The notes below the pieces were generated by a model, which had not been told where the DNA came from, did no database searches, and saw only the letters and a program-made list of their open reading frames with translations. From Macrostomum lignano (lineage: Eukaryota): a DNA stretch of 64,000 nucleotides. Shown piece by piece: positions 42,499-44,836 of the stretch. Position 1 is the stretch's first letter. The number at the start of each line of letters is the position of its first letter. The stretch is taken from NCBI GenBank assembly GCA_002269645.1, contig NIVC01003680.1, positions 1 through 64,000 of the forward strand, written 5' to 3'. Made by a program: the position numbers and the translations under genes.

Positions 42499-43392
42499 CG
42501 GGAACTCCCGCAGCACCCGCTGCATGGCCGCCCGGCTCTCCCGCAGGACAGCCTGCGCACTCTGCCAGTCGTTCATCTTCATGAGCGCCAGGCACTGCAG
42601 GCAGATGGCGGTCACCCCAGCTAGAGATCGCACAGCATCGATGTCCGACAGCAGATCCCGGACATTGTCGGTCAGCTGTGGCTGGAGCAGCCGCTCCATG
42701 ACCCGGTAGACAAAAAAGGCGACATCCCTGCAGCCGGCGAGCCGCCTGGTCGCGCCCAATCCCGCTGTCAGCTGCCGCTTGTGACCCGGAATTGCCAGCG
42801 TCATTGGCTGGAAGACGGCAACGCCGCCAATGCTGTCTTCCGCGACGCTGGACTGAAGCCGACGCAGCCGATTGATGAGCAGCTGCTCAGAGTCGGCGGC
42901 CAGGCTGGCCAAAGCTTTCTGCAGAATGGAGGCTGAGCACGCCGTGGCGAGCGGCATCCAGCTGGTCGGGAAGGCGGCGCAGCGCAGCTGATTGTCGCGC
43001 AGAAACGGACCCTCGGCGTTCTTCACCGTCATCAGCTGCAGAGCGTCGCGAACCTCCACGGCGAGGCTGCCGCTGCGACGTTTCGCCAGAAGGTAGTGCA
43101 GCAGCACCTGCTTGCAGTGCACCTCGGAGAAGCACGCAGCGTTGGGGTATTTCTTGGGTAGCTCTTCTAGGAGAAGCATCTTCAATGCCACGTAGAGTCG
43201 GCCTTGGTGACTTGTGAGCTTGCGGAACAGCGCCCTGTCCAGCAGGCTGAGGTCCAGCCGGCCTGTGGGCTGCCTGCTTGTCCGGCCTCCAACCTGCAGC
43301 TCGAACTCGTCCGGCCGAATGTACACCGGCTGGTCCGGCAGGTCCAGCAGCTCCAGGCGGGGTAGGCGGGGCCGCTGGCAGCAGGGGAAGAC
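42499..43392 (-). CDS. Mab-21/cGAS-like receptor gene: Mab-21 C-terminal lobe
   Basis: cccccag|GTC, CCG|gtaag. [45 protein letters not shown] matches the Mab-21 pattern WRLSFS.E..L..Q..Y..LK..SYHLKT.L. Confidence 0.8.
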
Positions 43393-43444
43393 CTGGGGGC
43401 ATGGGTGGCGGTTGACAGCTGCCGTTATCGGAGTTCCTGTTATC

Positions 43445-43610
43445 AATGTCTGTCAGTGTCTGTTGTCAGTGTCTGTTGTCAGTGTCTGTTGTCAGTGTCT
43501 GTTGTCAGTGTCTGTTGTCAGTGTCTGTTGTCAGTGTCTGTTGTCAGTGTCTGTTGTCAGTGTCTGTTGTCAGTGTCTGTTGTCAGTGTCTGTTGCCAGT
43601 GTCTGTTGTC
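43445..43610. repeat. 13-bp intronic repeat (gtcagtgtctgtt)n
   Basis: Directly visible. Confidence 0.93.
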
Positions 43611-43648
43611 AAAGAATCCGCAATGTACTCTGTACATTTAATACTCAC

Positions 43649-43779
43649 CTGCTCCAGGCTAAGAGCGGGTCCGCAGGCTGTGAGTCCCAAACTCTTAGTG
43701 GCTTGCCTGCGCATCTCGTTAACCATCAGTACGGCGTCCTCCTTGAGCAGATTCATCGCCCGCAGGTGCACGATGCAAT
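43649..43779 (-). CDS. Mab-21/cGAS-like receptor gene exon (contains GPA motif)
   Basis: cccaag|AT TGC, CAG|gtgagt; phases fit; ..LTACGPALSLEQ. Confidence 0.8.
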
Positions 43780-43904
43780 CTTGGGGTAAGATGTGTTTGA
43801 AGTTTTTATAATAATATATGATCTACTGCTTTAGAAAATAACTCTTTATTTCTTTTATATCGTTTAGGGCTTGTGACTGAGATGGAAAGATGGATGGAGA
43901 GACT

Positions 43905-44456
43905 GATAGATAGATAGATAGATAGATAGATAGATAGATAGATAGATAGATAGATAGATAGATAGATAGATAGATAGATAGATAGATAGATAGATAGATA
44001 GATAGATAGATAGATAGATAGATAGATAGATAGATAGATAGATAGATAGATAGATAGATAGATAGATAGATAGATAGATAGATAGATAGATAGATAGATA
44101 GATAGATAGATAGATAGATAGATAGATAGATAGATAGATAGATAGATAGATAGATAGATAGATAGATAGATAGATAGATAGATAGATAGATAGATAGATA
44201 GATAGATAGATAGATAGATAGATAGATAGATAGATAGATAGATAGATAGATAGATAGATAGATAGATAGATAGATAGATAGATAGATAGATAGATAGATA
44301 GATAGATAGATAGATAGATAGATAGATAGATAGATAGATAGATAGATAGATAGATAGATAGATAGATAGATAGATAGATAGATAGATAGATAGATAGATA
44401 GATAGATAGATAGATAGATAGATAGATAGATAGATAGATAGATAGATAGATAGATA
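43905..44456. repeat. (GATA)n microsatellite
   Basis: Directly visible. Confidence 0.98.
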
Positions 44457-44538
44457 AAAATTTTCTATTCCGCCAGCATAGAACCTGTGGCTTTCTTAGC
44501 CCAGACTAGACAGCAGACAGCACTAACAACCTGCTCAC

Positions 44539-44836
44539 CATGGTTGAGCGTCACCGAGCCGTCCTCGTTCAGCACAACCTTCTGCACCGGCTGTCGGCAG
44601 GAGCAGGCTCCGGCAATGTGCACCATGTAGTCTGGCACGATGTACTTATAGGTGAGCGCCGAGTCGTAGCCGCACCTGCCGTCAACTCTGAAGGTGTTGT
44701 AGCCCCAGCCCTCGGTGAAATTGCCAGCGAATACAAAACCGGCATCCCGCCACATTTTCTCCAGCACGTCCGCGAAGGCCCAGTGGGCGCTGACTCGGTC
44801 GCGTTCAAAGCCGCATTTTTGCATCATTTCGGCGGC
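44539..44836 (-). CDS. Mab-21/cGAS-like receptor gene exon: nucleotidyltransferase signature region (degenerate)
   Basis: gacag|GCC, CAT G|gtgag. FAGNFTEGWGYNTFRVDGRCGYDSALTY aligns to the Mab-21 GS..EG..(S)D.D motif. Confidence 0.75.

Follow-up and report, generated by a model that had tools for sequence, protein, structure and literature searches.

The question raised by this locus is whether a gene that keeps the fold of the cGAS-like receptors (cGLRs), and not the residues of their catalytic centre, encodes an enzyme, the remnant of an enzyme or a protein maintained for another role. The stretch of DNA analysed here (the window) comprises 64,000 nucleotides of the flatworm Macrostomum lignano, positions 1 to 64,000 of contig NIVC01003680.1 in assembly GCA_002269645.1, where an original prediction had proposed, at positions 42499-44836, a cGLR of the Mab-21 type with a remodelled and probably inactive catalytic motif. 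As mapped by six-frame translation and splice sites, this interval does contain exons 2-4 of a minus-strand gene, but the gene actually spans 41225-45718, about twice that length. Its spliced model, an open reading frame (ORF) of 882 codons for a protein of 882 amino acids (the window protein), is identical at every residue to NCBI entry PAA50282.1 ('hypothetical protein BOX15_Mlig031884g1', M. lignano), and the protein was previously in the databases only as 'hypothetical'. Since a degenerate catalytic signature is found here in a maintained gene, the best reading is that of a maintained pseudoenzyme: with a probability of roughly 0.6, the gene is a selectively kept product of a Macrostomum-specific expansion of ankyrin-repeat cGLRs (ANK-cGLRs), whose protein would act by binding, as a regulator, decoy or adaptor.

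The chemistry of cGAS, OAS and the CD-NTases depends on carboxylates and on the serine of the GS motif, by which the catalytic Mg2+ and the triphosphate are positioned. The family motifs vGSYSEGWGN and eSDIDv are conserved in 14 out of 14 active paralogues of M. lignano, and the GNFTEG and DSALTY of the window protein, singled out in the original prediction as standing in place of GS..EG and of the expected metal-binding (S)D.D, align with them column for column, as they do with the GS..EG and SD.D.m of mollusc cGLRs, so that the homology had been assigned rightly for both. The four motifs that define the site are the following.

44708..44725, minus strand: GNFTEG (residues 165-170, exon 2), matching GS..EG in the alignments with the family and with mollusc cGLRs; the GS serine has become Asn.
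44648..44665, minus strand: DSALTY (residues 185-190, exon 2), opposite e-S-D-I-D-v in the alignment, with A187 and T189 in place of its two metal-binding Asp residues.
43658..43672, minus strand: GPALS (residues 263-267), equivalent to [RK]PAvD of the family and e-I-D of molluscs; the third catalytic Asp is Ser267.
43111..43128, minus strand: SEVHCK (residues 359-364), aligned with SYHxKT of the family, mollusc cGLRs and cGAS; its Ser and Tyr are replaced by E360 and V361.

A 'GPA' at 43664-43672 (residues 263-265) had been taken for a retained canonical GPA/SPA motif of Mab-21/cGAS proteins. This assignment had to be rejected, as the canonical S-P-A aligns with Q-A-T at residues 252-254, and the 'GPA' equals the [RK]-P-A that, in the family, immediately precedes the third catalytic Asp (family alignment and hhalign). 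Because that position is here Ser267, as confirmed with hhalign against the mollusc E-I-D, a third acidic residue has also been lost, which had gone unseen. Altogether, the changes S166N, D187A, D189T, D267S and Y361V affect residues kept in 12-14 of 12-14 active paralogues and destroy the signature that all of them retain, and the Ser of SYHxKT is replaced as well; the catalytic motif is thus indeed remodelled, and more degenerate than it had appeared. The claim that the C-lobe motifs are retained held for R315, Q333, G334, K341, H362, K364 and F400, but not for the Ser and Tyr of SYHxKT. Among the 73 columns conserved in at least 90 % of the active paralogues, 36 are kept by the window protein, while all five active-site columns are changed. 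The structural neighbours of the site that have been kept are G165, W171, G172, G180, S186, H200, C205, C207, P264, A265 and C275.

Li et al. 2023 (PMC9980059) recognised cGLRs by the motif h[QT]GS [X8-20] [DE]h[DE]h [X50-90] h[DE]h, by homology over both lobes and by predicted AlphaFold2 structural homology to known cGLR or CD-NTase enzymes, and defined the enzymes also by their ligand-activated synthesis of a nucleotide second messenger. Both the homology and the predicted structure are found in the window protein, and the motif is absent from it, with A-G-N (165-166), S-A-L-T-Y (186-190) and L-S-L (266-268) at the places where the paralogues have vGS, SDIDv and vDxv; it is therefore classed as a cGLR-derived pseudoenzyme and not as a cGLR enzyme. 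One could still imagine a working enzyme in which D179, D185 and E269 rebuild a non-canonical metal site and a nucleotide product is made. D185 and E269 are acidic and lie on the same beta-strands as the lost catalytic positions, at i-2 and i+2, which makes a shifted metal site conceivable, and the purifying selection described below shows the protein to be functional. However, five independent active-site positions have changed together, including the GS serine and the SYHxKT Tyr, and most active paralogues are also acidic at the position of residue 185, which is therefore not a compensation. Moreover, the nearest relative (P0002) is devoid of the entire GS/DxD segment, and targeted mutagenesis of four enzymes confirmed that the active-site motif is required for synthesis of the second messenger (PMC9980059). 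Continued catalysis is thus considered highly improbable, and the replaced residues argue that the window protein very probably has no nucleotidyltransferase activity.

The fold itself could not be read from domain databases. The HMMER search proposed as a check of the original prediction found no Pfam family at E<=10, Mab-21 (PF03281) and Mab-21_C (PF20266) included, whether the query was an exon block, the core fragment or P0001, a protein of 99 % identity, and on its own it would have wrongly spoken against the finding; a phmmer search of the window protein against PDB sequences gave no match at E<=10 either. A word-indexed protein search, whether queried with the full protein or the family profile, yielded no entry but the 99 % copy and also missed the profile's own paralogues, and it is hence uninformative. 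With no Pfam match to rely on, the fold was demonstrated from paralogues and by hhalign and Foldseek. In this regard, an exhaustive phmmer search with residues 128-882 as query against 1.84 billion cluster representatives found 19 relatives (E 4e-23 to 8e-4), all of them ankyrin plus Mab-21-like proteins of M. lignano, whose matches span residues 128 to ~600 of the window protein. Mab-21_C is matched by 14 of the 20 family members (best E=9e-8) and ankyrin families by 16 of the 20, with no ankyrin match of Pfam in the window protein. The paralogues share with the latter the nucleotidyltransferase core, including a family insertion of ~10 residues between GS..EG and SDxD, the C-lobe motifs and a C-terminal extension of ~250-350 residues (HPF..LP, D.AW.F, NF.AL, D.QE), so that the alignment continues to about residue 720. 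Unlike them, the window protein lacks ankyrin repeats and carries a proline-rich N-terminus, an insertion in exon 3 and a unique tail of ~160 residues.

With the ankyrin repeats trimmed, the family profile matched in the PDB 'cGAS-like receptor 1' (8gjy, E=1.5e-6) and many cGAS chains (E~1e-5), against E=0.29 for MAB21L1. An hhalign comparison of the family with eight mollusc cGLRs from the table of PMC9980059 reached a probability of 99.5 % (E=3.7e-23) over the region from the strand of the third catalytic Asp through the C-lobe; for the N-lobe alone the values were E=2e-4 and 46 %, with GS on GS and SDxD on SDxD, and this alignment placed the ~10-residue insertion of the flatworm family between both motifs. 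The AlphaFold2 model was made on the family alignment for P0001, whose catalytic region does not differ from that of the window protein and whose fragment is offset by +123, and reached a predicted local distance difference test score (pLDDT) of 64 and a predicted template-modelling score (pTM) of 0.66. It contains strands at residues 161-164, 187-193 and 265-274, with beta1 ending just before G165-N166, and the changed residues fall, as expected, in the beta1 loop, beta2 and the third strand. In agreement with the second proposed check, Foldseek searches of the PDB returned with this model human cGAS, Cv-cGLR1 (8gjw), MB21D2 (7lt1) and then bacterial CD-NTases over ~390 columns, with a probability of 1.0 for the cGAS/cGLR matches and target-normalised template-modelling scores of ~0.5. 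The profile, hhalign and Foldseek matches support a cGAS/cGLR fold at moderate model confidence, and the window protein almost certainly has a cGLR fold with a degenerate site.

In comparison with the animal cGAS/cGLR enzymes (human cGAS 6cta, C. virginica cGLR1 8gjw, cGLR1 8gjy and human MB21D2 7lt1), the two-lobed caged fold is shared over those ~390 columns, and the flatworm family has in common with them the C-lobe profile match and the order of motifs GS, [DE]h[DE]h, h[DE]h and SYHxKT. On the other hand, sequence identity of the window protein is 10-13 %, the catalytic signature is absent and a large C-terminal domain without fold match has been added. For this extension no match was obtained in PDB sequences, nothing better than E=0.016 in Pfam, and at best E=0.17 with a probability of 0.2 in Foldseek searches of PDB structures. 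No Zn thumb of the cGAS type was identified in the window protein. Conserved in the flatworm family, between the DxD strand and that of the third Asp, is an H-x4-C-x-C ... G-H pattern (H200, C205, C207, H221), which may be a metal site at a position unlike that of the cGAS Zn thumb; in the window protein (residues 200-221, exon 2, ~44557-44620) H200, C205 and C207 are kept and the last residue is S221.

If the site is dead, the next question is whether the gene is alive. The intact reading frame over five exons claimed for it was borne out, with 882 codons, introns bounded by GT..AG and full identity to PAA50282.1, and a 99 %-identical copy, PAA50355.1, has the same four splice junctions. The gene is organised as follows.

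45338..45718, minus strand: exon 1, start codon and residues 1-127, from ORF and splice mapping and composition; the same junction is found in PAA50282.1 and PAA50355.1.
44539..44836, minus strand: exon 2, residues 128-226 and the first base of codon 227.
43649..43779, minus strand: exon 3, the remaining two bases of codon 227 and residues 228-270.
42499..43392, minus strand: exon 4, residues 271-568, comprising the helix bundle that forms the C-lobe in the cGLR fold, then the start of the family-specific C-terminal extension.
41225..42169, minus strand: exon 5, residues 569-882 and the stop codon, with the remainder of the C-terminal extension and then the unique tail.
42170..45337, minus strand: region of the four introns (44837-45337, 43780-44538, 43393-43648 and 42170-42498), all with GT..AG ends.

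The 127 residues of exon 1 form a low-complexity, proline-rich N-terminus (32 P in 127) at the position where the paralogues have their ankyrin repeats. Exon 2 holds the N-lobe of the nucleotidyltransferase core, made up of the spine helix, of beta1, which ends in G165-N166, and of beta2 with S186-A187-L188-T189, and exon 3 adds, according to the family alignment, an insertion of ~22 residues absent from the active paralogues and the strand G263-P-A-L-S267-L-E269. The part of the extension in exon 5 is helical with a small beta-sheet in AlphaFold2 models, the corresponding domain (residues ~460-720) being found in the paralogues too. The automated annotations of the locus disagree: P0038 (1932 amino acids, 'ANF_receptor domain-containing') and P0039 (792 amino acids, 'SWIM-type domain-containing'), both in the 90 % cluster of P0001, are older models of the UniProt/WormBase type that appear to fuse this gene with unrelated neighbours.

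Within the window, tblastn found no second gene copy or paralogue, and across the assembly the gene is present in three copies, in the window and on NIVC01003660.1 and NIVC01002387.1. All three are intact, with the same exon structure and identical junctions. They differ by ~16 synonymous and 8 non-synonymous events and by in-frame indels of 6 and 9 bp, none of these differences falling in the degenerate motifs; the pairwise ratios of non-synonymous to synonymous change (dN/dS) are 0.07, 0.25 and 0.14, and the non-synonymous deficit is significant (binomial P=1e-5). Each intron consists mostly of a single tandem repeat, namely a 35-bp unit (44883-45197), (TATC)n (43880-44456), a 13-bp unit (43451-43611) and (ACAG)n (42187-42488). 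The same four repeat families occupy the same introns in the other two copies (6522-9846 in locus L001 and 6514-9804 in L002), at numbers that differ up to more than 10-fold: 9/27/2 for the 35-bp unit, 144/79/126 for (TATC)n, 12/15/44 for the 13-bp unit and 75/58/121 for (ACAG)n. Intron lengths consequently vary 2-4 fold among copies while the exons are 97-100 % identical, that is, the exons are conserved against a fluid background.

A decaying or otherwise non-functional copy of the gene, or an artefact of annotation, intact in appearance only, would also account for a protein with no Pfam domain, annotated only as hypothetical and interrupted by introns full of unstable tandem repeats. Such a history is difficult to reconcile with an 882-codon frame across five exons with canonical splice sites, with three genomic copies out of three intact at identical junctions, with an excess of synonymous changes and indels that are all multiples of three, or with the retention of half of the conserved structural positions of the family. 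The dN/dS values and the intactness of the copies led to the rejection of a pseudogene, and we would give decay or artefact very little credit, marginally less even than a surviving enzyme. The claim of a maintained pseudoenzyme was in this way upheld.

A hint of how long this state may have lasted comes from P0002, the nearest paralogue (28 % identity over 477 residues). It has no ankyrin repeats, a short proline-rich start and no GS/DxD segment at all, and it shares with the window protein the derived EVHC state (as TEVHCR) and lineage-specific insertions. As the loss is shared, a maintained pseudoenzyme lineage is indicated, and the sequences of both proteins point to an old dead subclade.

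How such a protein might work can be sketched from what it has kept and lost. It retains the two-lobed nucleotidyltransferase fold of cGAS/cGLRs and the family C-terminal extension; it has lost the GS serine, each of the three carboxylates that bind metal and, from SYHxKT, both Ser and Tyr, and a proline-rich, disordered N-terminus stands in for the ankyrin repeats. From the chemistry of cGAS, OAS and CD-NTases, the loss of the three carboxylates and the GS serine should leave the Mg2+ ions and the triphosphate unpositioned, so that the two catalytic Mg2+ ions would not be bound and no cyclic or linear oligonucleotide signal would be produced. The protein would then act by binding, most likely as a regulator, decoy or adaptor in the pathway of the active paralogues. 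Either it may contend with them for the ligand by which they are activated, or the conserved scaffold and the C-terminal domain may serve to pair it with them, and the proline-rich tail would recruit partners of the SH3/WW type.

A precedent is found in vertebrates, where the catalytically dead OASL and the dead domains of OAS2 and OAS3 work beside active OAS enzymes. These are likewise dead members of a family of nucleic-acid-sensing nucleotidyltransferases, kept beside active ones and acting by binding, through ligand capture and partner regulation. They differ in belonging to the OAS branch of the fold and in being vertebrate proteins, and OASL has ubiquitin-like domains where the flatworm protein has a proline-rich tail and the C-terminal domain of its family. 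By this analogy, a role as regulator or decoy of the cGLR paralogues, in preference to an unrelated scaffold, is put forward tentatively. Its most specific form, an old maintained lineage of dead cGLRs comprising the window protein and P0002, in which ankyrin repeats gave way to a proline-rich tail and the C-terminal domain serves a dedicated negative regulator or adaptor of a flatworm-specific ANK-cGLR network, is more doubtful.

Besides the acidic residues close to the lost catalytic positions, several points weigh against a maintained pseudoenzyme of the cGLR pathway. Since the three copies diverge by only ~1.5-2 % at synonymous sites, the dN/dS values rest on 24 events; P0002 is an older automated gene model, whose absent core could be a skipped exon; and the AlphaFold2 model, with its pLDDT of 64, is of moderate confidence. 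Five M. lignano proteins of the ANK-cGLR family (PAA45980.1, PAA86972.1, PAA57558.1, PAA93208.1 and PAA68676.1, the first of which falls in the cluster of the phmmer relative P0005) are listed in the supplementary table of PMC9980059 among the 140 proteins cloned for a screen as predicted cGLRs, and none of the five is among the active enzymes named in its main text. Moreover, no member of the family has a demonstrated immune role.

This last point speaks for the main alternative, that of a non-immune scaffold comparable to MiD49/MiD51 or MAB21L1/2, in which the dead cage would be a structural or cofactor-binding module of an unrelated cellular or developmental process. In these proteins the Mab-21/cGAS fold (structure 5eog for MAB21L1) is also non-catalytic or has no known product. 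A scaffold of this kind would fit the retention of scaffold residues next to the loss of catalytic ones, a domain context unlike that of the paralogues, with a proline-rich N-terminus instead of ankyrin repeats, and the age of the dead subclade suggested by the 28 % identity of P0002. However, MAB21L1 (E=0.29) is further from the family profile than cGLR1 and cGAS are (E=1e-6 to 1e-5), no match of the MiD type appears in the profile results or among the Foldseek matches listed, and the family-specific C-terminal extension is still shared with the active paralogues, which points to a shared partner or ligand. In contrast with MAB21L1/2, the window protein stems from a lineage-specific expansion of the cGLR type and not from the conserved Mab-21 clade, and unlike MiD49/MiD51, with their N-terminal membrane anchor and Drp1-recruiting surface, its first 127 residues are proline-rich and of low complexity (no anchor prediction was run). 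An unrelated scaffold is accordingly seen as unlikely, and a pseudoenzyme kept within the cGLR family continues to be preferred.

Other elements of the window were also noted. An ORF matching the Pfam family CNPase (2',3'-cyclic nucleotide 3'-phosphodiesterase, E=3e-26) lies on the minus strand at 53133-53795, a few kb upstream of the dead cGLR, and the two are neighbours in synteny at each of the three copies (2019-2645 in L001 and 1942-2586 in L002); the presence of a gene with a cyclic-nucleotide phosphodiesterase fold beside one derived from a cGLR may be a coincidence. At 46764-46837, ~1 kb upstream of the start codon, (CTAACC)x12.7, a cyclic permutation of CCCTAA, constitutes an interstitial telomere-like TTAGGG repeat, and a 40-bp tandem repeat is found at 40639-40995, ~230 bp past the stop codon on the 3' side of the gene. 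At 57551-58318 on the plus strand lies an ORF in which MIB_HERC2 (E=6e-43) and ZZ zinc-finger domains were recognised; it probably represents one exon of a gene for a Mind-bomb-like E3 ubiquitin ligase. Between 12100 and 14400, a large repeat block contains long overlapping ORFs on both strands that match low-complexity Pfam families (Cornifin, ALTTAQ_rpt); these ORFs are most likely repeat artefacts and not genes.

The cGLRs are now viewed as a major family of animal pattern-recognition receptors. As their catalogues required an intact active site, dead relatives were filtered out and have gone unstudied; a literature search by gene and protein identifiers and by Macrostomum plus cGLR returned nothing on the window protein, and the dead gene copies are absent among the table entries listed from PMC9980059. 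According to the same paper, ankyrin repeats occur in some cGLRs, and most platyhelminths are without cGLRs apart from Mab-21-like proteins. It is in a phylum described in these terms that we find, inside a species-specific expansion, a dead member under purifying selection, in a laboratory animal amenable to RNA interference and transgenesis. Dead proteins with the Mab-21 fold are known and dead paralogues are to be expected in expansions, so that for a specialist the finding is plausible rather than startling, and if the protein were merely a divergent scaffold, it would be one more entry, of a routine kind, among the Mab-21-fold proteins known to be inactive. If it does act as a regulator or decoy, the pseudoenzyme logic of OAS and OASL would have arisen independently in cGLR networks, and attention would turn to the uncharacterised C-terminal domain common to the whole flatworm family. 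In its role as a dedicated regulator, should that reading be true, it would represent, in a phylum where cGLR signalling is reported to be mostly lost, an invertebrate counterpart of OASL and the first regulator of the pseudoenzyme type to be described inside the cGLR family proper.

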